In this document: positions 6,589 through 58,666 of the stretch, one piece after another | Layout: each line of letters opens with the position of its first letter | How positions within the stretch are numbered: position 1 is the first letter of the stretch | The notes under the pieces: generated by a model | Told to the model about the DNA's origin: nothing | The model's input: only the letters and a program-made list of their open reading frames with translations | The model's database searches: none | Assembly: GCF_032444005.1 (NCBI RefSeq) | Contig: NC_091287.1 | Location: forward strand, 509,702,001-509,766,000 | Length of the DNA stretch: 64,000 nucleotides | Source of the DNA: Ranitomeya imitator | Taxonomy: Eukaryota | Reading direction: 5' to 3' | Translations under genes and position numbers: made by a program

Positions 6589-6742
6589 NNNNNNNNNNNN
6601 NNNNNNNNNNNNNNNNNNNNNNNNNNNNNNNNNNNNNNNNNNNNNNNNNNNNNNNNNNNNNNNNNNNNNNNNNNNNNNNNNNNNNNNNNNNNNNNNNNNN
6701 NNNNNNNNNNNNNNNNNNNNNNNNNNNNNNNNNNNNNNNNNN
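6589..6742. other. Assembly gap (154 N)
   Basis: Run of N. Confidence 1.
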
Positions 6743-36093: not shown

Positions 36094-36466
36094 GGCCAAG
36101 TTCACACTGGGCGTTTTTATGCTAATTTTCAGCTGCGTTTTAAAGCACCAGCAAATCCTATGAGATTTCAGAAATCTCCAACACATTTTGTCATCAACAT
36201 TTTGTGCTTTGCATGGTTTTTTTGGACATTTTTCACTGAAAGAAGTGATATACTCTTTCACTTGAATGGGTGGTGAAAAAAAATGCAGGTATCAGATTTT
36301 GATGAGTTTTTTTTTTTTTTTTGCCAAAACGTTATTTTATAGAATAGGACATTCCCCCCCAACACTAAACTTCATCAGCATGCACAAGAGAAATCTAGCA
36401 TGCTAAAATCACAGCAAAAAATGCTTAAAAAAAAAAAAAAAAAAAAAAGTTAGTGTGAACTTGCCC
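36094..36466. mobile_element. Degenerate Harbinger-type MITE
   Basis: TAA-GGCCAAGTTCACACT ... AGTGTGAACTTGCCC-TTA. Confidence 0.7.
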
Positions 36467-36469
36467 TTA

Positions 36470-36861
36470 GGCTACGTTCCCACAATGAGCTTTTGATGTT
36501 GCAGATTTTCTGCACCCATTAAGTAAAAGTGGTTACGTACATTTTTCTCTTTTTCAAAAAAAAAAAAAAAAAAAAAAAAATCTCATTGCGGCAATGTAGC
36601 CTTATTCCCCATGGGGAAATAACCTGGAGAAGACGGCTTAATAGAAAATAAAGGGTTCAAGAAGATATGAATAATCCTCAGTAGGAAAAGTCATAGGGCA
36701 GATGACACAAAACATAGAAGTATTACATGCCATTTTACAGGGAATAATCTTGCATAAAAATTTTTTAAAGAAGGTTGTCCACTTTTGCATGAATTTTAAC
36801 GTAATGGATGCAGAATATCTGCAACAGAAACTCGTGAAAAGTTTGTTGTGGGAACGCATCC
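36470..36861. mobile_element. Degenerate Harbinger-type MITE abutting the previous one
   Basis: TTA-GGCTACGTTCCCACAA ... TTGTGGGAACGCATCC. Confidence 0.7.
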
Positions 36862-37170: not shown

Positions 37171-37211
<41 letters not shown>

Positions 37212-38122
37212 GTGGTGGCACTAAAGTGTAAAAATGATTATTAGCCTTAAATATATACACATTTAAGCAAAAAAGAAAATAACAATAATAATGGACTGTT
37301 CCCAGAGGTGGACAATGCTATTAAGGCTCCTATCCATCACCACCTGAATAAAGCTCTTGGGTGTCAATGTGACCATGATAAGAAATCCCAGCCGTGATAC
37401 AAGTGCATTCCCACTAGATCCTAGGTTGTTACATGGCAATACTCCACCTATTGTCCCCACTGAGAAATGCACTCTCCTCCTAGGATAGATCCGCCAGTTT
37501 ACAGGCAGCAGCATCTCACACTGAGCCAGATGTGGGCAATTAGCAGCTCAGCTCTGCTACATCTCATAGTAAGAGCAGCCTGAGCTTTCCATGGTAGGAG
37601 CAGAAGTGCAGCCATGGAATTAGCACTACAGGGGGCTGTATGGGGGGGACCCCATATCCTCGCAGCCAGACCCCAAAACCATAAGTGTCACCCCAACACT
37701 GACCTCTTTTGCTCCTCTTCCAGCGGTTGGGTTGGCAGTGGCTGTAATCCACACAGTTCAGGATGATGAGAGCAAATGAAAAGAGTCTGAACTGCATTTG
37801 TGCAGGTGATCAGAGCAAATAATGGAAGAATGTCAATGGGACTGTCCTGGGGGGGCAGAGATTACACACTGAGGAGGGTGAACAGGGTCCAATCACTCAT
37901 CCAAACTTCCATCTCTGGGGTAAATCAGTGCAACCTGGAAGGACAAAAAGAAGAATTGACCTTTCCACCACTTGCACTCCCATTATCCCACCCTCAGCCA
38001 ATTAAGCACTTGGGACAAATGTCTTTATAGCGCTAATCTGCCTAATTAGGGAGGGGGGAGTCATTAAAGGGTCCCAGGGAAAGTCATCCACCTGCGACAC
38101 TTCCTCCAAAGGCTGGACTCAC

Positions 38123-38379
38123 CTTGTAGTCGGGGACCTGAGGGTCACATCAGTGGGTGGCACATGGGGTGCTGAAAGTTTGGAGACCAGCTGAGGTCCA
38201 GAGGTTGGGATCCTAGTTGGAGGTGCAACAATTTGGGATCCTGACAATTTCCATCCAAAGAGGGAGCAGTGGCTGGTGGACAGTGAGGTCTTGTGTGACT
38301 TGTGGTGATCTGCAGGCAGCTCTGATGCTCCAGTAATGTATGAAGTCCTCTGGTCCTCCGCAAACAGCATCCAGGAGTC
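38123..38379 (-). CDS. Candidate coding exon of an unidentified host gene (MLFAEDQRTSYITG...DVTLRSPTT)
   Basis: Non-repetitive; acceptor GCTTTATTTAG and strong donor AAG/GTGAGT; one of three frames is open across all 257 nt; no recognisable domain. Confidence 0.3.
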
Positions 38380-40305
38380 CTAAATAAAGCAATGCCCGGC
38401 ACAGTGATCCTCCCCCTGCTCCTGCTCCCTCCCCTGCCTGAGCCAGCACAGTGTGCACAGCCTGCACCTACACAACTCCCGGCAGCTGCTCCGGGCTCAC
38501 CACTTTAACCCTCTAATGCCCACACTGGCACCGAGTCTAGGAGATCGGAACAGGAGCCACTCCACCCTTCACCTTGTAGTACCACAGCTTTCAGCACACC
38601 CTGCCTGTGAGCAGCCCATCTGTCCTATCATTAAATGACTGCATGTGTTAACCCTAGGAACCCCTTGCATTGCGCACTGACCTCCATAGTGTGCAGCAGA
38701 CTGAATAGTCCAGCGTTCCCTGCATCAATCTGTCTGTCCTCATAGTACTGTCCGCTCATCATATGTCACCATTTCTGATAGTACTGTCCGCTCATCATAT
38801 GTCACCATTTCTGATAGTACTGTCCGCTCATCATATGTCACCATTTCTGATTGTACTGTCCGCTCATCATATGTCACCATTTCTGATAGTACTGTACGCT
38901 CATCATATGTCACCATTTCTGATAGTACTGTACGCTCATCATATGTCACCATTTCTGATAGTACTGTCCGCTCATCATATGTCACCATTTCTGATTGTAC
39001 TGTCCGCTCATCATATGTCACCATTTCTGATAGTACTGTCCGCTCATCATATGTCACCATTTCTGATAGTACTGTACGCTCATCATATGTCACCATTTCT
39101 GATAGTACTGTACACTCATCATATGTCACCATTTCTGATAGTACTGTACACTCATCATATGTCACCATTTCTGATAGTACTGTCCGCTCATCATATGTCA
39201 CCATTTCTGATAGTACTGTCCGCTCATCATATGTCACCATTTCTGATAGTACTGTACACTCATCATGTGTCACCATTTCTGATAGTACTGTACGCTCATC
39301 ATATGTCACCATTTCTGATAGTACTGTCCGCTCATCATATGTCACCATTTCTGATAGTGCTGTCCGCTCATCATATGTCACCATTTCTGATAGTACTGTA
39401 CACTCATCATATGTCACCATTTCTGATAGTACTGTCCGCTCATCATATGTCACCATTTCTGATAGTACTGTCCGCTCATCATATGTCACCATTTCTGATA
39501 GTACTGTCCGCTCATCATATGTCACCATTTCTGATAGTACTGTCTGCTCACCATAGGTCACCATTTCTGATAGTACTGTCCGCTCACCATAGGTCATCAT
39601 TTCTGATTGTGCTGTCTGCTCATCATATGTCACCATTTCTGATAGTACTGTACACTCATCATATGTCACCATTTCTGATTGTACTGTCTGCTCATCATAT
39701 GTCACCATTTCTGATTGTACTGTCTGCTCATCATATGTCACCATTTCTGATAGTGCTGTCTGCTCATCATATGTCACCATTTCTGATAGTGCTGTCTGCT
39801 CATCATATGTCACCATTTCTGATTGAACTGTCTGCTCATCATATGTCACCATTTCTGATTGTACTGTCTGCTCATCATATGTCACCATTTCTGATTGTAC
39901 TGTCTGCTCATCATATGTCACCATTTCTGATTGTACTGTCTGCTCATCATATGTCACCATTTCTGATTGTACTGTCTGCTCATATGCCACCAATTCTGAT
40001 AGTACTGTCCGCTCACCATAGGTCACCATTTCTGATAGTACTGTCCGCTCATCATATGTCACCATTTCTGATTGTACTGTCCGCTCACCATAGGTCACCA
40101 TTTCTGATAGTACTGTCCGCTCATCATATGTCACCATTTCTGATAGTGCTGTCCGCTCACCATATGCCACCATTTCTGATAGTACTGTCCGCTCACCATA
40201 GGTCACCATTTCTGACAGTACTGTCTGCTCATCATATGTCACCATTTCTGATAGTACTGTATGCTCATCATATGTCACCATTTCTGATAGTGCTGTCCGC
40301 TCACC

Positions 40306-40599
40306 ATTATTATTATTATTATTTATTTATTTATATAGCACCATTGATTCCATGGTGCTGTACATGAGAAGGGGTTACATACAAGTTACAAATATCACAT
40401 ACAGTAAACAAACTAACAATGACGGACTGATACAGAGGGGCGAGGACCCTGCCCTTGCGGGCTTACATTCTACAGGATTATGGGGAAGGAGACAGTAGGT
40501 TGAGGGTTGCAGGAGCTCCGGTGTTGGTGAGGCGGTAGCTCCGGTGTTGGTGAGGCGGTAGCTCCGGTGTTGGTGAGGTGGTAGCTCCGGTGTTGGTGA
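40306..40599 (-). mobile_element. L2 LINE 3' end, copy 1, in the satellite
   Basis: (TAA)n/(TAAA)n tail plus TGTACAGCACCATGGAATCAATGGTGCTATA stem; shares GAGGACCCTGCCC with the L2 at 54472. Confidence 0.85.
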
Positions 40600-41443
40600 C
40601 CACCATTTTCTGCTCATCATATGTCACCATTTCTGATAGTACTGTCCGCTCATCATATGTCACCATTTCTGATAGTACTGTCCGCTCATCATATGTCACC
40701 ATTTCTGATAGTACTGTCTGCTCACCATAGGTCACCATTTCTGATAGTACTGTCCGCTCACCATAGGTCATCATTTCTGATTGTGCTGTCTGCTCATCAT
40801 ATGTCACCATTTCTGATAGTACTGTACACTCATCATATGTCACCATTTCTGATTGTACTGTCTGCTCATCATATGTCACCATTTCTGATTGAACTGTCTG
40901 CTCATCATATGTCACCATTTCTGATTGTACTGTCTGCTCATCATATGTCACCATTTCTGATAGTGCTGTCTGCTCATCATATGTCACCATTTCTGATTGA
41001 ACTGTCTGCTCATCATATGTCACCATTTCTGATTGTACTGTCTGCTCATCATATGTCACCATTTCTGATTGTACTGTCTGCTCATCATATGTCACCATTT
41101 CTGATTGTACTGTCTGCTCATATGCCACCAATTCTGATAGTACTGTCCGCTCACCATAGGTCACCATTTCTGATAGTACTGTCCGCTCATCATATGTCAC
41201 CATTTCTGATTGTACTGTCCGCTCACCATAGGTCACCATTTCTGATAGTACTGTCCGCTCATCATATGTCACCATTTCTGATAGTGCTGTCCGCTCACCA
41301 TATGCCACCATTTCTGATAGTACTGTCCGCTCACCATAGGTCACCATTTCTGACAGTACTGTCTGCTCATCATATGTCACCATTTCTGATAGTACTGTAT
41401 GCTCATCATATGTCACCATTTCTGATAGTGCTGTCCGCTCACC

Positions 41444-41737
41444 ATTATTATTATTATTATTTATTTATTTATATAGCACCATTGATTCCATGGTGCTGTA
41501 CATGAGAAGGGGTTACATACAAGTTACAAATATCACATACAGTAAACAAACTAACAATGACGGACTGATACAGAGGGGCGAGGACCCTGCCCTTGCGGGC
41601 TTACATTCTACAGGATTATGGGGAAGGAGACAGTAGGTTGAGGGTTGCAGGAGCTCCGGTGTTGGTGAGGCGGTAGCTCCGGTGTTGGTGAGGCGGTAGC
41701 TCCGGTGTTGGTGAGGTGGTAGCTCCGGTGTTGGTGA
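41444..41737 (-). mobile_element. L2 3' end, copy 2
   Basis: Same sequence as copy 1, 1138 bp downstream. Confidence 0.85.
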
Positions 41738-42910
41738 CCACCATTTTCTGCTCATCATATGTCACCATTTCTGATAGTACTGTATACTCATCCTATGTCA
41801 CCATTTCTGATAGTACTGTATGCTCATCATATGTCACCATTTCTGATAGTGCTGTCTGCTCATCATATGTCACCATTTCTGATAGTACTGTACGCTCATC
41901 ATATGTCACCATTTCTGATAGTACTGTCCGCTCACCATAGGTCATCATTTCTGATAGTACTGTCCGCTCACCATATGTCACCATTTCTGATAGTACTGTA
42001 GACTCATCATATGTCACCATTTCTGATAGTGCTGTCTGCTCATCATATGTCACCATTTCTGATTGTACTGTCTGCTCATCATATGTCACCATTTCTGATA
42101 GTACTGTATGCTCATCATATGTCACCATTTCTGATAGTGCTGTCCGCTCACCATAGGTCACCATTTCTGACAGTACTGTCTGCTCATCATATGTCACCAC
42201 TTCTGATAGTACCGTACACTAATCATATGTCACCATTTCTGATAGTACTGTCCGCTCACCATATGTCACCATTTCTGATAGTACTGTATGCTCATCATAT
42301 GTCACCATTTCTGATAGTACTGTGCGCTCATCATATGTCACCATTTCTGATAGTACTGTACACTAATCATATGTCACCATTTCTGATAGTACTGTGCGCT
42401 CATCATATGTCACCATTTCTGATAGTACGTACTCTCATCATATGTCACCATTTCTGAAAGTGCTGTCTGTTCATCATATGTCACCATTTCTGATAGTACT
42501 GTCCGCTCATCATACAGTATGTCATCATTTCTGATAGTGCTGTCTGCTCATCATATGCCACCATTTCTGATAGTACTGTACACTCATCATATGTCACCAT
42601 TTCTGATAGTACTGTCCGTTCATCATGTCACCATTTCTGATTGCACTGTCTGCTCATCATATGTCACCATTTCTGATAGTACTGCACCCTCATCATATGT
42701 CACCATTTCTAATAGTACTGTCTGCTCATCATATTTCACCATTTCTTATAGTACTGTACGCTCATCATATGTCACCATTTTTGATAGTACTGTCCGCTTA
42801 TCACATGTCACCATTTCTGATAGTACTGTCTGCTCATCATATGTCACCATTTCTGATAGTACTGTATGCTCATCATATGTCACCATTTCTGATAGTGCTG
42901 TCCGCTCACC

Positions 42911-43181
42911 ATTATTATTATTATTATTTATTTATTTATATAGCACCATTGATTCCATGGTGCTGTACATGAGAAGGGGTTACATACAAGTTACAAATAT
43001 CACATACAGTAAACAAACTAACAATGACGGACTGATACAGAGGGGCGAGGACCCTGCCCTTGCGGGCTTACATTCTACAGGATTATGGGGAAGGAGACAG
43101 TAGGTTGAGGGTTGCAGGAGCTCCGGTGTTGGTGAGGCGGTAGCTCCGGTGTTGGTGAGGTGGTAGCTCCGGTGTTGGTGA
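42911..43181 (-). mobile_element. L2 3' end, copy 3 (one 23-bp unit shorter)
   Basis: 271 bp versus 294 bp. Confidence 0.85.
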
Positions 43182-44208
43182 CCACCATTTTCTGCTCATC
43201 ATATGTCACCATTTCTGATAGTACTGTCCGCTCACCATAGGTCACCATTTCTGATAGTACTGTCTGCTCATCATATGTCACCATTTCTGATAGTACTGTA
43301 CACTCATCATATGTCACCATTTCTGATAGTACTGTACGCTCATCATATGTCACCATTTCTGATAGTACTGTCCGCTCATCATATGTCACCATTTCTGATA
43401 GTACTGTCCGCTCATCATATGTCACCATTTCTGATAGTACTGTCTGCTCACCATAGGTCACCATTTCTGATAGTACTGTCCGCTCACCATAGGTCATCAT
43501 TTCTGATTGTGCTGTCTGCTCATCATATGTCACCATTTCTGATAGTACTGTACACTCATCATATGTCACCATTTCTGATTGTACTGTCTGCTCATCATAT
43601 GTCACCATTTCTGATTGAACTGTCTGCTCATCATATGTCACCATTTCTGATTGTACTGTCTGCTCATCATATGTCACCATTTCTGATAGTGCTGTCTGCT
43701 CATCATATGTCACCATTTCTGATAGTGCTGTCTGCTCATCATATGTCACCATTTCTGATTGAACTGTCTGCTCATCATATGTCACCATTTCTGATTGTAC
43801 TGTCTGCTCATCATATGTCACCATTTCTGATTGTACTGTCTGCTCATCATATGTCACCATTTCTGATTGTACTGTCTGCTCATCATATGTCACCATTTCT
43901 GATTGTACTGTCTGCTCATCATATGTCACCATTTCTGATTGTACTGTCTGCTCATCATATGTCACCATTTCTGATAGTACTGTCCGCTCATCATATGTCA
44001 CCATTTCTGATAGTACTGTCCGCTCATCATATGTCACCATTTCTGATAGTGCTGTCCGCTCACCATATGCCACCATTTCTGATAGTACTGTCCGCTCACC
44101 ATAGGTCACCATTTCTGACAGTACTGTCTGCTCATCATATGTCACCATTTCTGATAGTACTGTATGCTCATCATATGTCACCATTTCTGATAGTGCTGTC
44201 CGCTCACC

Positions 44209-44502
44209 ATTATTATTATTATTATTTATTTATTTATATAGCACCATTGATTCCATGGTGCTGTACATGAGAAGGGGTTACATACAAGTTACAAATATCA
44301 CATACAGTAAGCAAACTAACAATGACGGACTGATACAGAGGGGCGAGGACCCTGCCCTTGCGGGCTTACATTCTACAGGATTATGGGGAAGGAGACAGTA
44401 GGTTGAGGGTTGCAGGAGCTCCGGTGTTGGTGAGGCGGTAGCTCCGGTGTTGGTGAGGCGGTAGCTCCGGTGTTGGTGAGGTGGTAGCTCCGGTGTTGGT
44501 GA
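44209..44502 (-). mobile_element. L2 3' end, copy 4
   Basis: Copy 2 + 2765 bp; carries the TAAGCAAA variant. Confidence 0.85.
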
Positions 44503-45675
44503 CCACCATTTTCTGCTCATCATATGTCACCATTTCTGATAGTACTGTATACTCATCCTATGTCACCATTTCTGATAGTACTGTATGCTCATCATATGTC
44601 ACCATTTCTGATAGTGCTGTCTGCTCATCATATGTCACCATTTCTGATAGTACTGTACGCTCATCATATGTCACCATTTCTGATAGTACTGTCCGCTCAC
44701 CATAGGTCATCATTTCTGATAGTACTGTCCGCTCACCATATGTCACCATTTCTGATAGTACTGTAGACTCATCATATGTCACCATTTCTGATAGTGCTGT
44801 CTGCTCATCATATGTCACCATTTCTGATTGTACTGTCTGCTCATCATATGTCACCATTTCTGATAGTACTGTATGCTCATCATATGTCACCATTTCTGAT
44901 AGTGCTGTCCGCTCACCATAGGTCACCATTTCTGACAGTACTGTCTGCTCATCATATGTCACCACTTCTGATAGTACCGTACACTAATCATATGTCACCA
45001 TTTCTGATAGTACTGTCCGCTCACCATATGTCACCATTTCTGATAGTACTGTATGCTCATCATATGTCACCATTTCTGATAGTACTGTGCGCTCATCATA
45101 TGTCACCATTTCTGATAGTACTGTACACTAATCATATGTCACCATTTCTGATAGTACTGTGCGCTCATCATATGTCACCATTTCTGATAGTACGTACTCT
45201 CATCATATGTCACCATTTCTGAAAGTGCTGTCTGTTCATCATATGTCACCATTTCTGATAGTACTGTCCGCTCATCATACAGTATGTCATCATTTCTGAT
45301 AGTGCTGTCTGCTCATCATATGCCACCATTTCTGATAGTACTGTACACTCATCATATGTCACCATTTCTGATAGTACTGTCCGTTCATCATGTCACCATT
45401 TCTGATTGCACTGTCTGCTCATCATATGTCACCATTTCTGATAGTACTGCACCCTCATCATATGTCACCATTTCTAATAGTACTGTCTGCTCATCATATT
45501 TCACCATTTCTTATAGTACTGTACGCTCATCATATGTCACCATTTTTGATAGTACTGTCCGCTTATCACATGTCACCATTTCTGATAGTACTGTCTGCTC
45601 ATCATATGTCACCATTTCTGATAGTACTGTATGCTCATCATATGTCACCATTTCTGATAGTGCTGTCCGCTCACC

Positions 45676-45946
45676 ATTATTATTATTATTATTTATTTAT
45701 TTATATAGCACCATTGATTCCATGGTGCTGTACATGAGAAGGGGTTACATACAAGTTACAAATATCACATACAGTAAACAAACTAACAATGACGGACTGA
45801 TACAGAGGGGCGAGGACCCTGCCCTTGCGGGCTTACATTCTACAGGATTATGGGGAAGGAGACAGTAGGTTGAGGGTTGCAGGAGCTCCGGTGTTGGTGA
45901 GGCGGTAGCTCCGGTGTTGGTGAGGTGGTAGCTCCGGTGTTGGTGA
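45676..45946 (-). mobile_element. L2 3' end, copy 5
   Basis: Copy 3 + 2765 bp. Confidence 0.85.
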
Positions 45947-46973
45947 CCACCATTTTCTGCTCATCATATGTCACCATTTCTGATAGTACTGTCCGCTCAC
46001 CATAGGTCACCATTTCTGATAGTACTGTCTGCTCATCATATGTCACCATTTCTGATAGTACTGTACACTCATCATATGTCACCATTTCTGATAGTACTGT
46101 ACGCTCATCATATGTCACCATTTCTGATAGTACTGTCCGCTCATCATATGTCACCATTTCTGATAGTACTGTCCGCTCATCATATGTCACCATTTCTGAT
46201 AGTACTGTCTGCTCACCATAGGTCACCATTTCTGATAGTACTGTCCGCTCACCATAGGTCATCATTTCTGATTGTGCTGTCTGCTCATCATATGTCACCA
46301 TTTCTGATAGTACTGTACACTCATCATATGTCACCATTTCTGATTGTACTGTCTGCTCATCATATGTCACCATTTCTGATTGAACTGTCTGCTCATCATA
46401 TGTCACCATTTCTGATTGTACTGTCTGCTCATCATATGTCACCATTTCTGATAGTGCTGTCTGCTCATCATATGTCACCATTTCTGATAGTGCTGTCTGC
46501 TCATCATATGTCACCATTTCTGATTGAACTGTCTGCTCATCATATGTCACCATTTCTGATTGTACTGTCTGCTCATCATATGTCACCATTTCTGATTGTA
46601 CTGTCTGCTCATCATATGTCACCATTTCTGATTGTACTGTCTGCTCATCATATGTCACCATTTCTGATTGTACTGTCTGCTCATCATATGTCACCATTTC
46701 TGATTGTACTGTCTGCTCATCATATGTCACCATTTCTGATAGTACTGTCCGCTCATCATATGTCACCATTTCTGATAGTACTGTCCGCTCATCATATGTC
46801 ACCATTTCTGATAGTGCTGTCCGCTCACCATATGCCACCATTTCTGATAGTACTGTCCGCTCACCATAGGTCACCATTTCTGACAGTACTGTCTGCTCAT
46901 CATATGTCACCATTTCTGATAGTACTGTATGCTCATCATATGTCACCATTTCTGATAGTGCTGTCCGCTCACC

Positions 46974-47267
46974 ATTATTATTATTATTATTTATTTATTT
47001 ATATAGCACCATTGATTCCATGGTGCTGTACATGAGAAGGGGTTACATACAAGTTACAAATATCACATACAGTAAGCAAACTAACAATGACGGACTGATA
47101 CAGAGGGGCGAGGACCCTGCCCTTGCGGGCTTACATTCTACAGGATTATGGGGAAGGAGACAGTAGGTTGAGGGTTGCAGGAGCTCCGGTGTTGGTGAGG
47201 CGGTAGCTCCGGTGTTGGTGAGGCGGTAGCTCCGGTGTTGGTGAGGTGGTAGCTCCGGTGTTGGTGA
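46974..47267 (-). mobile_element. L2 3' end, copy 6
   Basis: Copy 4 + 2765 bp; carries the TAAGCAAA variant. Confidence 0.85.
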
Positions 47268-48962
47268 CCACCATTTTCTGCTCATCATATGTCACCATTT
47301 CTGATAGTACTGTATACTCATCCTATGTCACCATTTCTGATAGTACTGTATGCTCATCATATGTCACCATTTCTGATAGTGCTGTCTGCTCATCATATGT
47401 CACCATTTCTGATAGTACTGTACGCTCATCATATGTCACCATTTCTGATAGTACTGTCCGCTCACCATAGGTCATCATTTCTGATAGTACTGTCCGCTCA
47501 CCATATGTCACCATTTCTGATAGTACTGTACACTCATCATATGTCACCATTTCTGATAGTGCTGTCTGCTCATCATATGTCACCATTTCTGATTGTACTG
47601 TCTGCTCATCATATGTCACCATTTCTGATAGTACTGTATGCTCATCATATGTCACCATTTCTGATAGTGCTGTCCGCTCACCATAGGTCACCATTTCTGA
47701 CAGTACTGTCTGCTCATCATATGTCACCACTTCTGATAGTACCGTACACTAATCATATGTCACCATTTCTGATAGTACTGTCCGCTCACCATATGTCACC
47801 ATTTCTGATAGTACTGTATGCTCATCATATGTCACCATTTCTGATAGTACTGTGCGCTCATCATATGTCACCATTTCTGATAGTACTGTACACTAATCAT
47901 ATGTCACCATTTCTGATAGTACTGTGCGCTCATCATATGTCACCATTTCTGATAGTACGTACTCTCATCATATGTCACCATTTCTGAAAGTGCTGTCTGT
48001 TCATCATATGTCACCATTTCTGATAGTACTGTCCGCTCATCATACAGTATGTCATCATTTCTGATAGTGCTGTCTGCTCATCATATGCCACCATTTCTGA
48101 TAGTACTGTACACTCATCATATGTCACCATTTCTGATAGTACTGTCCGTTCATCATGTCACCATTTCTGATTGCACTGTCTGCTCATCATATGTCACCAT
48201 TTCTGATAGTACTGCATCCTCATCATATGTCACCATTTCTAATAGTGCTGTCTGCTCATCATATTTCACCATTTCTTATAGTACTGTACGCTCATCATAT
48301 GTCACCATTTTTGATAGTACTGTCCGCTTATCACATGTCACCATTTCTGATAGTACTGTCCGCTCGGCATATGTCACCATTTCTGATAGTACTGTCTGCT
48401 CATCATATGTCACCATTTCTGATACTGCTGTACCCTCATCATATGTCACCATTTCTAATAGTACTGTCTGCTCATCATATGTCACCATTTCTGATAGTAC
48501 TGTACACTCATCATATGTCACCATTTCTGATAGTACTGTCCCGTCATCATATGTCACCATTTCTGATAGTACTGTCTGCTCATCATATGTCACGATTTCT
48601 GATAGTACTGTCCGCTCATCATATGTCACCATTTCTGATTGCACTGTCTGCTCATCATATGTCACCATTTCTGATAGTACTGTACACTCATCATATGTCA
48701 CCATTTCTGATAGTACTGTCCCGTCATCATATGTCACCATTTCTGATAGTACTGTACTCTCATCATATGTCACCATTTCTGATACTGCTGTACCCTCATC
48801 ATATGTCACCATTTCTGATAGTACTGTACACTCATCATATGTCACCATTTCTGATAGTGCTCTCCTCTCAACATATGTCACCATTTCTGATAGTGCTGTC
48901 TTCTCCTCTTATGTCACCATTTCTGATAGTACAGTACCCTCATCATATGTCACCATTTCTAA

Positions 48963-49096
48963 TAGTATGTTCCCATGATGAGATTTTGGGGAGTTTTGAT
49001 ATTACAGATTTCCTGTGCAATTTCTGCACTTAATAAGCAAAATAGGTTACTTGCAGCATGAAAAACTCACCAAAACCTCATTGTGGGAACACAGCA
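48963..49096. mobile_element. Short degenerate Harbinger-type MITE at the right edge of the satellite
   Basis: TATGTTCCCATGATGAG ... CTCATTGTGGGAACACAGCA-TAA. Confidence 0.55.
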
Positions 49097-49136
49097 TAAA
49101 CGTTCCAACATGAATTGCGTCCATGCATAGCTTTAA

Positions 49137-49329
49137 GGCGACGTTCACACTGAAGTATTTGGTCAGTATTTTACATCAGTATTTATAAGCCAAAACCAGG
49201 AGTGGGTGATAAATGCAGAAGTGGTGATGTGTTTCTAATGTACTGTTCCACTGATTGTTCCACTCCTGATTTTGGCTTACAAATACTGATGGAAAATACT
49301 GACCAAATACTGACCGTGTGAACATGGCC
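49137..49329. mobile_element. Harbinger-type MITE
   Basis: TAA-GGCGACGTTCACAC ... GTGTGAACATGGCC-TTA; CAGTATTT/AAATACTG internal inverted repeats. Confidence 0.8.
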
Positions 49330-49332
49330 TTA

Positions 49333-49879
49333 GACCTCCTTCACACATCCGTGTTTCCAGTACATATGTCATCTGTTTTTTTGTTCACAGATTACATTAC
49401 ATTATCACTTATGTTGCTGTGCACGTCTGATTTTTTTCAGCAGCATGGATGACCACGACCGATACAAGTCTATGGGTCCATGAAAAACACATACAGCACA
49501 CGGATGTCATCAGTGTACCATCCGTGTGTCATCAGTGGGTCATCCGTGTGTCATCAGTGGGTCATCCGTGTGTCATCAGTGGGCCATCCGTGTGTCATCA
49601 GTGGGTCATCCGTGTGTCATCAATGGGTCATCCGTGTGTCATCAGTGGGTAACCCGTGTGCCGTCAGTGTGTTGTTTGTGGGTCATCCATATGCCGATAG
49701 TGTCGTCAGTGTGTTGTCTGTGTTTAACATTGCAAAGTATAGAAGAAGTTTTGTAATTTCTTTCTTTGACCATACTGATGGTATACACAGCCACACAGGT
49801 GACACATTGATGGCAAACACTGATGGCACTGGTACCAGTTTTTCACGTATGTGATTAAACATGGATGTGTGAAGGAGAT
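49333..49879. mobile_element. Degenerate Harbinger-type MITE with a 22-bp tandem repeat (GTGTGTCATCAGTGGGTCATCC, ~6 copies at 49500-49660)
   Basis: CTCCTTCACACATCC ... GGATGTGTGAAGGAG termini. Confidence 0.7.
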
Positions 49880-49957
49880 CAAGGAAGTTGTTAACGAGTT
49901 TTGACATATGTTAGTAGCGGTACAGCTGCATAGACGCTCATCACCCAGAAATCTTTA

Positions 49958-50097
49958 GGCTATATTCCCACAATGAGTTTTTAGTGAGTTTTTTTATAAA
50001 CTGCGTATTTTTTTTTTTTAAAAACTACAAGTAACCTATCTTACATAATGGGTGCGGAAAATCTGCAACATCAAAAGCTCATGGTAGGAATGCAGTC
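49958..50097. mobile_element. Short degenerate Harbinger-type MITE
   Basis: TTA-GGCTATATTCCCACAATGAG ... CTCATGGTAGGAATGCAGTC-TAA. Confidence 0.6.
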
Positions 50098-50976
50098 TAA
50101 GGGCTCATATAGACGTCTGTGAGACACGGGCCAAGCACGGACTTCAATGCATGGACTGTCCGTGGGTCTCCCGACCGGACCACAACGCCCTCATATATGC
50201 TTATGAGGCTATTGAGCTTGGGTTGGGAGACCCCCAAACAGTCAATGCATTGCACTCCATACTTGGACCAATTTTCACGGACGCCTGTAAGAGACCTCTT
50301 TGGCCGTGACACAGGTCACACCACCATAGCTTGCTATGCGTCACTGCCACTTCACACAGCAATACAAGTGGATGGAGCCGTAATGGGACCCCAAGGGGAC
50401 TGTGATCAGCAAGATGCAAAAGTATCAAACCGGTTTAGATTTTTTTCGACTTGCTGGTCACAATGCAACGCCATTCACTTCTATTGCTCTGTGAATTGGC
50501 AGTGACACCTGACAAGCCCTGGCGGTGTGACACGTGTCCTTCAAGCCCCAGTCTTATATGTTAATTTTTTAATTTTTTTTAGAGAGAGAGAAGAAGCCAT
50601 TTCCAAATCAGGGGAGCATAGCAGCCAAGGCCTATGGACCGTCCCCACTCGCAACCTCATTAGAATATGGCTTCTAAACTAGATTTCTTGTCACTAGCAC
50701 ATCGGATCTCTACCAAAAAAAGGGATTATTTTTATTGGGGCGGGGGTGAAATCCTACACAGTCAGACCACTGCAGCTAAATGCTGGGGAATGTGCTGACA
50801 GGTTCCATTTAACTACTTTCTTTCCGTTACATTTTTTACCAATTTCCCAGTTTTTGTGGTTTTTGCTAATGTGATACTGGCTGGTTAGAAATCTGTGTCC
50901 AGTACTGCAGGTAGGGAAATCCTATAAATGCCTATTATTACAGCATTACAATGGGCAGCATATATTGCCCCATTAA

Positions 50977-51172
50977 GGCCGGGATCACACATGCGAGAAA
51001 CACGTCCGTGTCTCGCATGTGAAATCCAAGCTCTGGTGCCGGCACTGTGGAGTGGAGCGTGCGGCCGCCTAGCAACACATGGAGCCGCACGCTCCGCTCT
51101 GGAGTGCCGGCGCCAGAGCTTGGATTTCACATGCGAGACACGGACATGTTTCTCGCATGTGTGATCCCGGCC
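50977..51172. mobile_element. Young palindromic Harbinger-type MITE (196 bp)
   Basis: TIR GGCCGGGATCACACATGCGAGAAACA; TAA TSD; near-perfect hairpin. Confidence 0.93.
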
Positions 51173-51197
51173 TAAATGTGGTACTATAAATTTCAGC

Positions 51198-52820
51198 AAA
51201 TCCAAATAGAAGATAGATACTCCAGCTCCGATAAAAATGTGAAATCTTTATTAATCCAAATGGTTAAAATAGAAAATCCTTACATGCGATGGACCAAACA
51301 GGTGTTTGCAACGGTATTGGCAATACCATTGCAAACACCTGTTTGGTCCATCGCATGTAAGGATTTTCTATTTTAACCATTTGGATTAACCCCTTCATGA
51401 CCTTGGGATTTTTCGTTTTTCCGTGTTCGCTTTTCACTCCCCTCCTTCCCAGAGCCATAACTTTTTTATTTTTCCATCAATATGGCAATGTGGGGGCTTA
51501 TTTTTTGCAGGACGAGTTGTACTTTTGAACGACAACATTGGTTTTACCATGTCGTGTACTAGAAAACGGGAAAAAAATTCCAAGTGCGGTGAAATTGCAA
51601 AAAAAAGTGCAATCCCACACTTGTTTTTTGTTTGGCTTTTTTGCTAGGTTCAATAAATGCTAAAACTAACCTGCCATTATGATTCTCCAGGTCAGTACGA
51701 GTTCATAGACACCTAACATGACTAGGTTATTTTTTATCTAAGTGGTGAAAAAAAATTCCAAACTTTGCTAAAAAAAAAAAAAAAAAAAAAAATTGCACCA
51801 TTTTCCGATACTCGTAGCGTCTCCATTTTTCGTGATCTGGGGTCGGTTGAGGGCTTATTTTTTGCGTGCTGAGCTGGCATTTTTAATGATAGCATTTTGG
51901 TGCAGATACGTTCTTTTGATCGCCCGTTATTGCATTTTAATGCAATGTCGCGGCGACCTAAAAAACGTAATTCTGGCGTTTCAAATTTTTTTCTCACTAC
52001 GCCGTTTAGCGATCAGGTTAATGCTTTTTTTTAATTGATAGATCGGGCGATTCTGAGCGTGGCGATACCAAATATGTGTAGATTTGATTTTTTTTTTATT
52101 GATTTATTTTGATTGGGGCAAAAGGGGGGTGATTTAAACTTTTATATTTTTTTTATTTTTTTCACATTTTTTTTTACTTTTTTTTTTTTACTTTTGCCAT
52201 GCTTCAATAGCCTCCATGGGAGGCTAGAAGCAGGCACAACCCGATCGGCTCTGCTACATAGCAGCGATCTGCTGTTCACTGCTATGTAGCAGAATTGCAG
52301 GTGTGCTGTGAGCGCCGACAACAGGGTGGCGCTCACATCCACCGGTGATCAGTAACCATAGAAGTCTCTAGGACCTCTATGGTTACTATTCTGAAGCATC
52401 GCCGACCTCCGATCATGTGACGGGGGTCGGCGATGACGTCATTTCCGGCCGCCCGGCCGGAAGCGGTGGTTAAATGCCGCTGTCTGCGTTTGACAGCGGC
52501 ATTTAACTAGTTAATAGGTGCGGGTAGATCGCGATTCTGCCCGCGCCTATTACGGGCACATGTCAGCTGTTCAAAGCAGATGACATGTCCGGGCTTTGAT
52601 GCGGGCTCACCGCGGAGCCCTGCATCAAAGCAGGGGATCTGACCGCGGACGTACTATCCCGTCCGAGGTCAGATAGGGGTTAATAAAGATTTCACATTTT
52701 TATCGGAGCTGGAGTATCTATCTTCTATTTGGATTTGCTGCTGCTGGACGTCTGGGTCAGGACGAACTCCCGTGCTCCGTGCCTGCTGGTCTGGGTGGTG
52801 GTTTATATACATGTGTCATA
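51198..52820. mobile_element. Fold-back retroelement insertion (Penelope-like, 5'-inverted), ~330 bp once the nested piggyBac-type element is removed
   Basis: 15-bp direct repeat ACTATAAATTTCAGC at 51183-51197 and 52821-52835; 51194-51319 is the reverse complement of 51321-51389 plus 52684-52740; the family assignment is inference. Confidence 0.6.
51390..52679. mobile_element. Non-autonomous piggyBac-type element (1290 bp)
   Basis: TTAA TSD at 51386-51389 and 52680-52683; termini CCCCTTCATGACCT / reverse complement CCCCTATCTGACCT; left end nearly identical to that of the 1559 element. Confidence 0.88.
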
Positions 52821-53704
52821 ACTATAAATTTCAGCCCTCCCTGTCCATTCATTGACCTACAGCACATTGCTTTACTCCAATTACTGCCCATTATTGTGGT
52901 GCTAAAGTTTCAGCTCCCAGTTATATTTTAAACCTCTAGGTACCAATATGAAAACTTCAGCTTAGGGCCCATTCACATGACAGTTTTTCACATAGAGTAG
53001 TGTCCTGTCTGTCAGTGTTTTGTTATGTTCTATGTGGCCATTCACTTGTTTTTTTTTTCCTGGGTCGGAGAAAAAAAATGGACAGCACAGTGATGGCATC
53101 CCGATGCAAATGGATGACAAGTGGGTGGTAAAAATGGACATGTGGTCCAAACGCGAAGACTGATCAGATCCATCGCACTGATGAAAAATAGTCTGTTTTT
53201 CCCCAACGAGAGAAATCACTGACCTAGGAATTCAGCCTATAGTTGGTTTCACGCATCACTTTTTTCTCATTCGGTCTATGGTTTTCTTTGTTTTGTTTTT
53301 TCAGCACTTTTAGTCCGGCGTCACACTAGCGAGTTTTACGGACGTATGAGAGGCGCAGAAAATACGAATTGCATACGGTACAGTGATTCTCTATGGCCCA
53401 GCTCCTACCTGCCGTATTTTAAGGATCCATATTATGCTGTCTTGTACGGCCGAAGAAAATCGCAGCATGCAGCGTTTGTCAGCGTATTGCGCAAAAAATC
53501 CACCAATGAAAGTCAATGGGGGTGAGAAAAATACGGATTACACACGGACCAGCAGTGTGACTTGCGAGAAATACGCCAGACATCTCCAGGTGCCAGGAAA
53601 TGTGCCAAGCCCTCAATCAGGAAGCTCAGACATGCTAATTAGCTGAAAAAGCCAGACAGACATCCCGGAAGTCTGGCACTCGCCTCCAGGGAGTTGCAAG
53701 CAGC

Positions 53705-55997
53705 ATGGCATCCATCATTAACGTGGATATGCTCCTCATCCTGGTCCAAGAAAGGCCAGAAATCTGGGACCAGCGGGATCCAAACTACTCCAACCGGGCC
53801 AGGAAAGAGGCAGCTTGGAGGACCATCTGTGGGAACCTATTCCCAGATTTTGACCAACGCACACGTGCGGAGCAGAAACAACTTTGTAAGTACACTCATG
53901 TTGCGACATTAATTAACCTTAAAAAATGCTTGACCTACATGATTTCATGCCAATTTTTGGGGTGCTTAGTCTGGTATTTTTTTTTACATTTTTTTGACAA
54001 AAACAAAGATGCTGAACATGAGAAAGTGTTTACGTACATACATAATATAGATGTTGCGTTGGGTACTATTTTTGTTAGCGCCAGACTAGTACAGAGGGGC
54101 GTGGACCCTGGCCTTGTGTTGTTTCATTTTATTGTGTATAATGCTTTTTTGCTTTTAAGCAATTTAAACTTTAGGAAATTCATTTAAGAAGGCATTTTTT
54201 TCACATCGTTAAAATATGATCAATCAATGCCAACTTTTTAAAGCAATGTGCAGAATGAGCTTATAGAATATTTTTTACCATGTCATTGTAGTGGAAGATT
54301 CTATGACACGATGGCGCAGCATCAGAGACCAATATCGCCGGGAAAAGCAGCAGCGGGCAAGAAGTGGGTCAGCAGCTCCACCAAAAAAGCGAAAGTACAT
54401 ATACTAACATCGACTTTCCTTTTTGGATCCCAGTATGGAACTAAGACCGTAAGTAAAAACATCACAACACAATTATTATTAATATTATTATTGTTATTAT
54501 TATTTTTGATTGTTGTAGCGCCATTTATTCCATGGCGCTTTACATGTGAGGAGGGGTATACATAATAAAAACAAGTACAATAATCTTAAACAATACAAAT
54601 CATAGCTGGTACAGGAGGAGAGAGGACCCTGCCCGCGAAGCCTCATAATCTACGAGGGATGGGTGAGAATACAGTAGGCGAGGGTAGAGCTGGTCATGCA
54701 GCGGTTTGGTTGATCGGTGGTTACTGCAGGTTATATGCTTGTCGGAAGAGGTGGGTCTTCAGGCTCTTTTTGAAGGTTTCGATGGTAGGCGAGAGTCTGA
54801 TGTGTTGTGGTAGAGGATTCCAGAGTAGGATTCATACACGAGATAAATCTTGTATACGATTGTGGGAAGAGGAGATAATAGGGGAGTAGAGAAGGAGATC
54901 TTGTGAGGATCGGAGGTTGTGTGTAGGTAATTACCGGGAGACGAGGTCACAGATGTATAATAAACTTATGTCAGCAAATGACTCAACTATTAATTTTTTT
55001 GTTTTGGTTTATTGTTTAATAACAGAACACAGTCCAACCTCACTGAGAGGGAGACCGGGTCGGAGTCGGAGGGTCTCATCGATCCCATTGGTGTTGAAGA
55101 AGAGGTGGCAGGTCCATCTTTGACCTCTTCTACCTCCATCCTTCCTTGACCATCGGCTTCTGCATCACAAGAGACAGCAGCAAGTGTCCAAGATGCAGCA
55201 CCACCACCCTCAGCAGCACCTGATTCTGGAAGCCAGGAAGAGCATGGTCACAGCAGCAGCCCTACTGTCCCACTGGAGTCCTCCCCACAGGCAGCTGGGC
55301 CTTTACGCAGAGGCCGCAGAAGGAGAGAGCTGCAAGCCAATAGGAGGGATGTGGATGCTGGGGTCCTCAATTATTTGGCCAGGGCAGCCATGGATGATGG
55401 AGAGGAGGCCTTTGCTCGCAGCCTTGCCCGGTACCTTCATCCCCTTCCTGTGAGGTGAGGCTACGTGTGAGAGGGTGTATTCAAATCCTGATTGATTTAT
55501 GCACCTCCCCAAATGACCCCTATGAAGTTTTGGAATTTATTGAGAGAAGGCAGCTTTCACCACATAACCTCTTGCGCCTTCCACGACCTCAACAGGTGCA
55601 TGGTCAATCAGGATTTGAAGCACCTCCTCCACGTGTGCCTACACCTCAACCCCTCCCCACCCATAATCAACCAAGGCCAGCACCATACTATATGGCAGCC
55701 TACAACCAACCTTCCCAATATGGCCACTTTTCCAGACCCAGTGCTGTAGGCTGGTCCCAATCTGGGTTTGGACGACATGGCCATATTGGGGATGGCTATG
55801 AATCCAGCCAATATGTTCAGCAGCATGAGGGGCAAAGACAATTCCCTTATGGCCAATACCCAACTGGCCAATATGAGCAAGGCCTTTATTTAGATCCGCC
55901 ACATACAGCATCCACACAGGGTGAAGGACAATTGGCCCAACAAAGGCAGGACCCTGAGCTGCCGCCATCACCTCCACCAACTTACAGAAATCTGTAA
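53705..55997 (+). pseudogene. Harbinger Myb/SANT-like MADF-BESS DNA-binding protein, 3 exons (53705-53885, 54292-54448, 55026-55997)
   Basis: LILVQERPEIWDQRDPNYSNR...AWRTI and TRWRSIRDQYRRE (MADF); DGEEAFARSLARYL...VRLRVRGCIQILID (BESS-like); GT-AG introns in matching phase; stops at 54405 and 55147, frameshift near 55450. Confidence 0.85.
54472..54957 (-). mobile_element. L2 LINE 3' fragment in intron 2 of the MADF gene
   Basis: (TAA)n tail; minus strand encodes an ORF2 C-terminus RSSQDLLL...LWNPLPQHIRLSPTIETFKKSLKTHLFRQAYNLQ*. Confidence 0.9.
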
Positions 55998-56338
55998 GCC
56001 AAAGTTATTTTTGTTTATTTTTTTGCAGCATAACCATGTTTTGCTTAACTTTGTGCTGTAATTGAACTTTGTTCTGTTGTGGTTTAAAAAAAAACGAAAA
56101 CAAAAACAAAAAACCATATGAAACAAATATGGTTTAAAGTTAAGACCAAAGGGCTTCTGCAATAAGTAAAAAATGTTGTCAAAAGCCAATTGACGTTTGT
56201 GGGACAATCATTCTTACATCACACACACATATGCTCTGTTCATAAACATCTGGTAATTAAGTAAATACAACACACAGAGTACAGTTTCTATAGGCATAAA
56301 ATATTTTATGGTGATAATATATTTTGAAAATAAGGAAA

Positions 56339-58666
56339 TCACAACTGAGAAATAGCATTATCTTGCCAGGGAGTAGCACCCTGAGGAGAAACAAAATAAT
56401 TTGTGAAAATATCTCTCACTTTTATTCCAGAAAGGGGACGGCGTGGAGGAAGGCGATGTGGTGTAGGCCTACTCACATTGGGCAACATTTCTTTACCAAT
56501 AACAGATGATGGGCAATCATGAAGTCTAGTAAAATTGTGCAAAACAACACACGCTTTAATCATGTCATTAATAGTAGCCTCACTCAGCTGAATGGCAGAC
56601 TGGAGGAGACGCCATTTGGCACACAGAATCCCAAAGGCACACCCCACCAGTCTACGCGCCCTGGAAAGCCTCAAATTAAAAACACGCTGCCGGTGATCCA
56701 GGTTGCGCCTGGGATAAGGCCTCATGACATTCCTTGTCAATTGGAAGGCCTCATCTCTCACAAGAACATATGGCACTGCTTCAGCATTGGAGCCTGGGAG
56801 TTGTTGTGGTGGTGGGAGGTCTAACTGGTTGTCACGTATCCGCCGACCCATAATGGAGGAATTGAACACCCTAGAGTCTCCTGTTCACCCATAGGCCCCA
56901 ATGTCTACAATTATAAACCTGTAGTTACTGTCAATTACAGCTAACAGAACTACAGAGAAAAACTGCTTATAATTGTAGAATTGGGACCCAGAGTTCGGCG
57001 GCTTACGTACCCTGATGTTTCCCATCCAGGGCTCCAATGCAGTGTGGGAAGTCACAAGTGTCATTGAACCCACGGGCTATTTTGAGCCAATCTGCCATTT
57101 TTGGCTCAGGCATGAAAACATCATGTAGTTTCGCCCATATTTCAATACATGTTGAGTGAACAATGCCAGAAATCGTGGAGCGACCAATGAGAAACTCCAG
57201 GTGTAGTCCCGCATAAGACAATCCAGTTGACAGGAAGCTAAAAGGACACAAAAAAATCATATTAATTATGTAACAATAGTTTTGATAAAACATGAGAAAG
57301 CGCAAGCATGTTGTTTACTAAAAAACACAGTAATATCATAGAAATTAATCGAGATTTACCTAGTGTACATAAGTAGAACATTAAAAATACATATTTTCAT
57401 TTTGGTTTTCTCCAAAGTAACACATATATTTTAAAATAGCTGCTAGCAAACAACCCTGAAAAAAAATCATCATCAACATACAGTATGTGAAGATGTTGAA
57501 TACATACCATAAGGTAAGGAGAAGACGCTCCTCTGCGGATATGCTTTTTCGCATCCTGGTGTCCTGATACATGAGTCTCCAACAAGATATCAAATGTTGG
57601 TATTGTCATTCGACAGTATAGGTAAAACTTATCAGGATGTGCACGCAGAGCTGTATAGAGCCTCTGGAAATGGCCTTTAGTGAGGTGTTGGGTCAAAAGA
57701 GGATGCACCCACTGTTAGGAGTCGAGTTCCCGCCGCTGCACAGGGGGAATCTCGAACCATGTCTGCTGCGGTCTCCCATTCTGCATCGGCCGCAGTGGAG
57801 CCTGCTCAGCAGAGACGTCGGTCCCAGCGTCTCACTGAATCTGATACTGTGCAAAGAGTTACTGCTGCCTCTCCAGGCTCTACTATTGTACCCTGCACTG
57901 GTCTGCTGCGAGCAGGCTTTTCTGGGACTAAGTCCTGCTTTGCCCACACTGAGCATGCCCAGGGTAAGACCTCTCAGTGGAGATCAAGGGTCACATGCTC
58001 AGGTACTGCAGCAACTTCCATTAGTCCTCCAGGAAGGCCCTGTACCTGATCAAGTTCTGTGGCAGCCTTCCATTGGTCCTTGTTGGAAGGTCCTGTAGGT
58101 GCTACAGCTATAAAAGGTTCTCATGACCGCATGGCCATGCGCTAGTATCAAATATGTACGAGCTCAGCGCCAGTGTGGTCGTGTGTGTGGTCAGGGACCG
58201 GCTTAAATAAACCCCTAGAATGCTGGCGAGGAGTTTTGTGTATGCAGTCAGGGACCCGGCTGAAATAAGTCATTAGAATTCCGGCTCCACCGGAGAGGAG
58301 CTGCATGTTGGTTGGACTGCATGACCACTGTCGGCTCTACACAGTAGCTGTGTCGCCTGTGAGCTAAACAGGGCACAGCGTTCTCTTTACTACGGGCTCT
58401 GTGAAGTAACAGAGTCCGTTTGTACTAGTTTGCTTCGCCGCCTTGCTTAGCAGCAGGTTCTTTCCTGCACGGTAGATCCCGGGTTGCGAACGCACCTTTC
58501 TCAGCTAATAAATATATTCAGTGCGTTCCGCCAAACCCTATCACCCACTTTCTTCTTCTCCTCCTTCGCGGATCTACAATCGCAGGGTATAGCTGGCAAA
58601 CCGACGTGACAAGACCCAGTTAAACAAAACCCGCTGAGTTGGGGTGAAGTGCAGTAGGTCAGACAT
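56339..58666 (-). pseudogene. Harbinger (HARBI1-like, DDE_Tnp_4) transposase pseudogene; intron 57507-57238; interrupted by a solo LTR
   Basis: RRRRKW/VHPL, ISAEERLLLTL/FLSTG, FPHCIGALDGKH, FYNYKQFFSVVLLA, RDEAF, RARRLVGCAFGIL, ACVVLHNF; frameshifts, TGA at ~56885, catalytic E read as G. Confidence 0.93.
57713..58543 (+). mobile_element. Solo LTR (831 bp)
   Basis: TGTTAGG...CCCTATCA; 5-bp TSD CCCAC at 57708-57712 and 58544-58548; TATAAAA at 58109, AATAAA at 58507. Confidence 0.92.

Follow-up and report, generated by a model that had tools for sequence, protein, structure and literature searches.

The 36-bp satellite array and its six inserts

The 64-kb stretch of frog DNA analyzed here (the window) contains a tandem array of a 36-bp satellite that is interrupted six times by the same transposon fragment. 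The array was recovered as a single call by Tandem Repeats Finder (period 36 bp, 285 copies with the inserts included, 78% matches), and its limits agree to within one nucleotide with the span of 38742–48966 given in the first-pass annotation. Over its 10.2 kb, monomer segmentation distinguishes 239 segments, consisting of 216 monomers of 36 bp, six insert-bearing segments and 17 segments of other lengths; 52 of the segment sequences are distinct. The monomers have a mean pairwise identity of 91%, and adjacent pairs are 92% identical. The CpG at monomer positions 12–13 has decayed in 135 of the 216 monomers. The monomer was not found elsewhere in the 64-kb window. All of the coordinates are collected in Table 1.

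Table 1. Features of the satellite array and of the related LINE sequence, in window coordinates
Feature	Position	Strand	Remarks
36-bp tandem satellite array	38742..48967	+	Tandem Repeats Finder and monomer segmentation
Older tandem duplication, ~1.15 kb	39438..41783	.	satellite block and insert, twice
Insert copy 1, long	40306..40599	-	3' UTR, stem-loop and tail 40306–40513; minisatellite 40514–40599
Insert copy 2, long	41444..41737	-	identical to copy 1
Insert copy 3, short	42911..43181	-	23-bp minisatellite, 2.7 copies
Insert copy 4, long	44209..44502	-	G at 44311; A in copies 1, 2, 3 and 5
Insert copy 5, short	45676..45946	-	identical to copy 3
Insert copy 6, long	46974..47267	-	G at 47076; identical to copy 4
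2765-bp unit 1	41176..43940	.	long insert, 32 monomers, short insert, 28 monomers
2765-bp unit 2	43941..46705	.	mosaic: left part like unit 3, right part like unit 1
2765-bp unit 3, partial (0.62 unit)	46706..48424	.	passes on the right into array sequence that is not duplicated
Putative interval of the last unequal exchange	44312..44765	.	unit 2 coordinates, from the table of variants
Diverged relative of the insert	54487..54930	-	same 3' UTR, stem-loop and tail; broken LINE ORF2 end precedes

Two other readings of the array were considered and set aside. Open reading frames of up to 534 amino acids run across the array, but we do not regard them as coding because a stop-free 36-bp period yields them mechanically. 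Among Rfam models compared with positions 38000–42000, an archaeal C/D-box snoRNA aligned to the minus strand of the monomer (E values of 1–7) and a lncRNA model also aligned (E value of 1.9), both at chance level.

The insert occurs in a long form of 294 bp and a short form of 271 bp (ending at start + 293 and start + 270, respectively). The 23-bp difference corresponds to one copy of an internal 23-bp minisatellite, which is present in 3.7 copies in the long form and 2.7 in copies 3 and 5. The tail faces the low-coordinate end, as in copy 1, and the minisatellite lies at the truncated end. Compared with the satellite monomer in both orientations, this minisatellite has no similarity beyond that of shuffled sequences (89 of 300 shuffles were as good). 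The insert sits within a single monomer, where three to five target bases have been lost and there is no target-site duplication. Each copy has a single CCATGG site, and no other site occurs between 37612 and 52214, so that the NcoI ladder of 1138, 1467 and 1298 bp proposed earlier is correctly predicted.

In all six inserts the adjoining 30 bp on the left and the junction on the right are the same, and a search of the whole 64-kb window found both junction strings at these six sites exclusively. In the assembled sequence the six inserts descend from a single insertion, since their junctions and truncation point are identical. This bears out the origin first proposed for them, and the six start positions and the spacings (1138, 1467, 1298, 1467 and 1298 bp) reported with it are exact. 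Six separate insertions of an L2 element that targets the satellite would account for the presence of several copies and for little else; the shared truncation point and junctions refute them, and the order of the flanking monomer variants agrees from insert to insert over hundreds of bases. We assign this explanation practically no probability.

Identity of the insert

The insert is the 5'-truncated 3' end of a LINE, in minus-strand orientation. Both the minimum free energy and the centroid folds contain a stem-loop with an 8-bp stem and a 7-nt loop directly before the tail. On the strand of the element the tail reads (AAAT)3(AAT)6, short tandem repeats in place of poly(A).

Additional evidence comes from a diverged relative located downstream of the array, which is 72% identical to the insert over approximately 200 bp (E value of 8e-19). 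The stem is kept in the relative through a compensatory change from A-U to G-C on both sides, in a comparison of two distinct sequences. The frame upstream of the relative's 3' UTR encodes a 36-amino acid ORF tail with 461 protein matches, and the matched segment is formed by the last 35 residues of long proteins. When the domains of such C-terminally matched long proteins were scanned, RVT_1 was present in four, three of which also have an APE-type endonuclease domain (Exo_endo_phos). Continuity with the ORF2 C-terminus is thus seen in the 72%-identical relative and not in the truncated insert itself. A literature search for the ORF2-tail motif returned no match. Similarity between the 23-bp minisatellite and the ORF2 end of the relative is at the level of shuffled sequences (1317 of 2000 scored as well).

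In L2-clade LINEs the ORF2 protein recognizes a 3' stem-loop of this sort (PMC4176376, PMC1636434). The insert resembles the stringent-type tails of UnaL2 and ZfL2 described in these studies (PMC1636434, PMC4176376) in having its stem-loop directly upstream of a short-tandem-repeat tail, and in the preservation of the stem by compensatory change in the relative. It differs from UnaL2 in that it is a fragment without reverse transcriptase and has no match to the corresponding Rfam model: the UnaL2 3' element gave none up to an E value of 10 in positions 38000–42000. The insert likely belongs to the L2 clade, judging from its architecture and from general features of L2 elements as opposed to a reverse-transcriptase tree. 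A SINE that had borrowed such a LINE tail could also have been the source. Of the L2 3' stem-loop and tail that the first-pass annotation ascribed to each copy, the stem-loop, the tail and the derivation from a LINE 3' end are therefore upheld, and the L2 label is likely from the architecture.

Nested duplications in the array and a mosaic unit

The insert-bearing part of the array contains tandem duplications of different age. In the older, 1.15-kb duplication the lag between matching positions is 1174 on the left and 1138 on the right, a gap of one monomer. Exact runs at the lag of 1174 cover 39438–39717 and 39756–39947, and identity at the lag of 1138 extends over 39792–40681 with an exact run of 783 bp (39863–40645). 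The two halves, aligned over 1134 bases, are distinguished by four substitutions and one indel of 36 bp. At a lag of 2765, positions 41176–45659 match 43941–48424, which corresponds to 2.62 units and includes 3219 consecutive bp without a difference. The 2765-bp units are approximately 99.9% identical, with one to four differing sites away from the edges, and blocks of 1321 bp and 1444 bp recur unchanged from one unit to another. These lag identities agree with the earlier description of a 1138-bp duplication followed by a two-insert unit of 2765 bp repeated nearly three times. These exact runs of 783 bp and 3219 bp contrast with a monomer identity of only 91% in the same array. All of the duplication joints hold the 36-bp phase, and monomer segmentation found no hybrid partial monomers in the array except at the insert.

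The three units are told apart by a small number of variants, including the G at 42001 and 44766 versus the C at 47531 that had been correctly reported. In the table of variants, unit 2 has the state of unit 3 at 43976, 43991, 43996 and 44311 and the state of unit 1 at 44766, 45452 and 45482. As assembled, then, the duplications are nested and the middle unit is a mosaic. Such a mosaic is exactly what one unequal crossover between these two groups of sites, in the interval given in Table 1, is expected to leave.

The history that we propose begins with the entry of a 5'-truncated, minus-strand LINE 3' end of the L2/CR1 type into one satellite monomer. Unequal homologous exchange between out-of-register monomers flanking the insert would then have duplicated the insert-bearing blocks, and the most parsimonious series of insert numbers is 1, 2, 4 and 6. 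The final step was probably one crossover between two misaligned arrays of 1.6 units, from which the 2.6 units of 2765 bp now seen would result. The product would be a small composite repeat, formally of higher order, made up of the satellite, the LINE fragment and the 23-bp minisatellite. Upstream of inserts 1, 2 and 4 each block is a mosaic of the others, and a distance tree of the older duplications was rejected because one-monomer shifts confound the distances. For these same reasons we make no claim as to the order of the first two duplications. From this pattern we infer that the mechanism was crossover, that the events took the order given and that the array is neutral.

The copy number may in part be a product of the assembly, with a true locus of four inserts (1.6 units) or fewer and an assembler that looped once too often. 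Units 1 and 2 are indeed identical over 3219 bp, as are the 1321-bp and 1444-bp blocks between units, and a loop in the repeat graph would give the same mosaic unit 2 as a crossover. However, the array is only 10.2 kb long, so ordinary long reads would span all of it, and fixed differences separate the three units in a consistent nested pattern. Additionally, monomer indels, the 23-bp indel and substitutions separate the older duplications, and no assembler would invent these. We consider an extra loop unlikely. The first-pass annotation had favored recent unequal crossover over assembly duplication; the variants do fit recombination, but its dismissal of an assembly loop was overstated given that the same mosaic is expected from one.

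Real duplications could also have arisen by template switching or slippage during replication, or by rolling-circle copying of an excised circle followed by reintegration, in place of unequal crossover at meiosis or between sister chromatids. These routes likewise yield in-phase tandem duplications and are indistinguishable from unequal crossover by sequence alone. A rolling circle would, however, be expected to produce many identical units of one length, whereas three periods of different ages are present, and a reciprocal exchange gives the mosaic unit 2 as its simple product. Copying of this kind seems to us about as doubtful as the assembly loop. The locus is probably an interstitial satellite array with a captured LINE 3' end that was amplified by unequal exchange as a neutral by-product.

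Higher-order structure, significance and known composite repeats

The array had been described as a centromere-like higher-order repeat. The formal organization is present because the insert was amplified within larger tandem units: neighboring monomers are diverged (91% identity on average, 92% between adjacent monomers), and the identity of the units, at approximately 99.9%, is far above that of the monomers. Likeness to a centromere is not supported beyond this form. In place of a homogeneous array of many units there are 2.62 units following the older 1.15-kb duplication, and in place of a large satellite domain that dominates the region there is a 10.2-kb array set among ordinary transposons in the 64-kb window. 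On its left the array borders sequence that is single-copy in the window, and on its right it borders MITEs; the window also holds Tc1/mariner and Harbinger elements.

A transposon that carried the array was rejected as an explanation. An inverted match between the two flanks is provided solely by a MITE family of approximately 140 bp whose members are each complete in themselves, and no terminal repeats bracketing the array were found in the flanks.

That the array is centromeric or otherwise functional, or is becoming so, with selection maintaining the higher-order unit, is suggested by the formal structure and by nothing else. Against it are the small size of the array (10.2 kb, 2.6 units), the presence of a Tc1/mariner transposase ORF and a Harbinger DDE ORF within 15–25 kb on either side with MITEs abutting, and the confinement of the monomer to this array in the 64-kb window. 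The heavy decay of CpG also fits a methylated and unconstrained repeat. We regard a functional role as highly improbable and consider that the composite arose neutrally from the dynamics of the array.

The locus offers a compact and fully readable example of a satellite that absorbs a foreign insertion into its repeat unit. Because a single insertion marks the units, it serves as a built-in marker with which each unequal exchange becomes visible, and the last one can be placed within 454 bp. The locus may be of use in teaching, and as a population marker since individuals should differ in copy number, which the NcoI ladder would show directly. There is a slim chance that the composite is of consequence beyond a local accident. 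Minus-strand satellite transcripts ending in the L2 stem-loop and tail might be copied in trans by the L2 machinery, in the manner of a SINE, and seed the satellite elsewhere; alternatively, the array might be a young chromosome-specific satellite, possibly a pericentromeric one. As we read it, the locus leaves what is known of satellite evolution and centromeres unchanged.

The array shares with higher-order repeats of the alpha-satellite type the arrangement of diverged monomers (91%) inside near-identical multi-monomer units (~99.9%), attributed in both to unequal exchange. However, the frog monomer is 36 bp and not nucleosome-sized, there are 2.6 units and not hundreds to thousands, and the array lies interstitially among transposons and is known here from its sequence. 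A parallel in composition is provided by the bovine satellites 1.711a and 1.711b, in which a satellite and an insertion sequence are amplified together. In both cases a mobile-element fragment was apparently inserted once and co-amplified in a longer repeat unit, but the bovine examples are genome-scale satellites whereas the frog example is one small array.

Composite repeats in the human genome are tandem arrays of a unit with at least three repeat types, including a transposable element and a satellite (Hoyt et al., bioRxiv 10.1101/2021.07.12.451456). The frog unit similarly combines three types head to tail (the 36-bp satellite, the LINE 3' fragment and the 23-bp minisatellite) and, like the human elements (Hoyt et al.), evolves in tandem as one. 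It differs from them in being a single 10-kb locus of 2.6 units described at the level of sequence. Composite repeats of transposable element and satellite are already a known kind, and the frog locus is a clean but ordinary case of array growth.

The 36-bp satellite array and its inserts

The segment 38742-48967 was recognized by Tandem Repeats Finder as one 36-bp array. In our own segmentation 216 monomers measure exactly 36 bp and a few deviate in length; there are 52 distinct segment sequences, and the mean pairwise identity between monomers is 91%. The most variable monomer positions are 12-13, a CpG that is kept in 81 of the 216 monomers and has mostly decayed to TG or CA. Such decay is the customary mark of a methylated, unconstrained repeat. 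No occurrence of the monomer outside the array was found in a search of the 64-kb window. Immediately to the left of the array, 38728-38741 resembles monomer positions 7-19 (motif CTGTC...CTCAT); this hints, as an impression only, that a short direct repeat at this site may have expanded into the array. On both strands, at 38740-40367 and elsewhere in the array, stop-free ORFs reach lengths of as much as 534 aa. They are generated mechanically by the 36-bp period, and gene finders may annotate them as proteins.

Non-satellite segments interrupt the array at 40306, 41444, 42911, 44209, 45676 and 46974 (copies 1-6; spacings 1138, 1467, 1298, 1467 and 1298), as the first-pass annotation had listed. 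Its proposal of a single amplified insertion is also borne out. All six inserts share their left flank, and at the right junction of each a 13-base monomer end carrying an additional T meets a monomer of 23 bases, without its first 13. In a window-wide search both junction strings were found exclusively at the six insert sites. Because the truncation point is identical in all six, the inserts stem from a single insertion with later duplication. Shared junctions and a common truncation point exclude six independent insertions. The sequence CCATGG occurs once per insert and is absent elsewhere in or near the array, in agreement with the earlier annotation.

In copies 1, 2, 4 and 6, which are 294 bp long, an internal 23-bp repeat occurs 3.7 times; in copies 3 and 5 it occurs 2.7 times, which shortens them to 271 bp. 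One substitution distinguishes copies 4 and 6 (G at 44311 and 47076). Read directly from the sequence, the insertion point lies within one monomer, of which 3-5 target bases were removed; the junction sequence contains no target-site duplication.

Identity of the insert

The insert, which may resemble the mammalian L2 3' end, terminates on the minus strand in an (AAAT)3(AAT)6 tail. Immediately before the tail, both minimum-energy and centroid folds contain an 8-bp stem with a 7-nt loop. A diverged relative at 54487-54930 has 72% identity to the insert (E 8e-19), and its stem is kept through a two-sided change from A-U to G-C. Farther upstream the relative runs into a disrupted reading frame, whose end lies a little over 170 bases short of the tail. 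A search of 1.84 billion proteins with the C-terminal 36 residues of this frame (54724-54831, minus strand) gave 461 matches at E ≤ 0.001, and in many of these the aligned region is the extreme C-terminus. A domain scan of eight long matches identified RVT_1 in four, three of which also have an APE-type endonuclease. In one further match RVT_1 is joined to a host VWD domain, and the remaining three have host domains only, consistent with gene models that acquired a TE-derived end. Because the frame of the relative matches the C-termini of RVT_1/endonuclease proteins, we assign the insert family to LINE 3' ends. The relative itself lies within a stretch annotated as a Harbinger (53313-58998); it is an insertion nested in, or adjacent to, that element and should be removed from its model.

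In stringent-type L2-clade LINEs a stem-loop is followed by a short-repeat tail, and the stem-loop is recognized by the ORF2 protein (PMC4176376, PMC1636434). The insert has this architecture, which makes L2 its likely clade. The Rfam UnaL2 model had no match in 38000-42000. The insert fragment is very short, and it may instead be a piece of a SINE with the same tail. For the 23-bp minisatellite of the truncated end, comparison with the ORF2 end of the relative and with the satellite gave no significant similarity.

Higher-order structure and duplication history

With L and S for long and short inserts and I0-I6 for the intervening satellite stretches, the layout of the array is I0 L I1 L I2 S I3 L I2 S I3 L I6. 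At a lag of 2765 bp, 41176-45659 aligns onto 43941-48424, giving 2.62 units, within which 3219 bp in a row match exactly. Between successive units, the I3-plus-insert blocks are identical over 1321 bp and the I2-plus-insert blocks over 1444 bp. The segment 39438-41783 is an older duplication, about 1.15 kb in size, with a lag of 1174 at its left side and 1138 at its right; 783 bp are exact. The 36-bp phase is preserved at every duplication joint, which is exactly what homologous exchange between out-of-register monomers would give.

Few sites differ among the three 2765-bp units (41176-43940, 43941-46705 and the partial 46706-48424). Unit 2 agrees with unit 3 at 43976, 43991, 43996 and 44311, and with unit 1 at 44766, 45452 and 45482. 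Position 47531 shows the usual monomer type; the G found at 42001 and 44766 is therefore derived. If a 1.6-unit array self-paired with a shift of one unit, one crossover would yield unit 1, a hybrid of the left part of unit 3 and the right part of unit 1, and then unit 3. This predicted order is the order observed, and we infer that the last exchange lay inside 44312-44765. The same mosaic would result if an assembler had made one pass too many through a near-identical repeat. The array is just 10.2 kb, and ordinary long reads would span it entirely. We think it unlikely that the last unit is such an artefact. The older duplications are regarded as real because monomer indels, the 23-bp indel and substitutions separate them.

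At least three duplications are needed to derive six copies from one insertion, and the shortest copy-number path found would be 1, 2, 4, 6. In one early step the insert and its upstream block would have been duplicated together. In the other, the exchange partners would have been the monomer just upstream of the first insert and one that lies about 1.1 kb downstream of the second, giving the order I0 L I1 L I2 S I3 L I6. The single out-of-register crossover of this 1.6-unit array would be the final step. We claim no order for the first two duplications, since the blocks upstream of the inserts are mosaics of one another and one-monomer shifts distort their distances.

Surroundings and comparison with known repeats

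Transposable elements and inverted repeats around the array
Feature	Position	Strand	Description
MITE, about 140 bp, three copies	36463-36602, 48975-49127, 49927-50104		inverted-repeat ends of about 20 bp
Tc1/mariner transposase ORF, 361 aa	15371-16456	+	Tc3/Sleeping-Beauty-type HTH domains and DDE_3
Harbinger/PIF ORF, 176 aa	56339-56869	-	C-terminal half of DDE_Tnp_4 nuclease
5'-truncated LINE 3' end (relative)	54487-54930	-	broken ORF2 tail, 170-nt UTR, stem-loop, AAT-rich tail
Hairpin-like inverted repeat	49154-49311		52-nt arms, 94% complementarity
Hairpin-like inverted repeat	50961-51188		105-nt arms, 90% complementarity
Hairpin-like inverted repeat	51251-51389		69-nt arms, 99% complementarity

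To the left of the array, 37210-38741 has no second copy in the window. The right flank begins with the MITE family, the second copy of which abuts the right end of the array. No terminal repeats bracketing the array were found. The three hairpin-like inverted repeats are probably MITEs, and the Tc1/mariner transposase ORF looks intact. At 49505-49672 a 22-bp unit with an 11-bp sub-period is repeated in tandem 7.5 times (92% matches), and 6589-6742 is a run of 154 N. The surroundings are ordinary interspersed-repeat DNA and not a satellite domain. Of the centromere-like higher-order repeat proposed in the first-pass annotation, the higher-order form is present, but with 2.6 units only and in this ordinary setting. 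We consider it most improbable that minus-strand transcripts ending in the intact L2 stem-loop and tail spread the satellite by being copied in trans, or that the array is a young chromosome-specific satellite.

Bovine satellites with a co-amplified insertion sequence are the classical case of such a structure. The merit of the frog locus is its clarity, as the insertion marks every exchange. Among described structures, it comes closest to the composite repeats of complete human assemblies, in which at least three types of repeat, TEs and satellites among them, form the repeating unit (10.1101/2021.07.12.451456). The frog locus is a small member of this kind.
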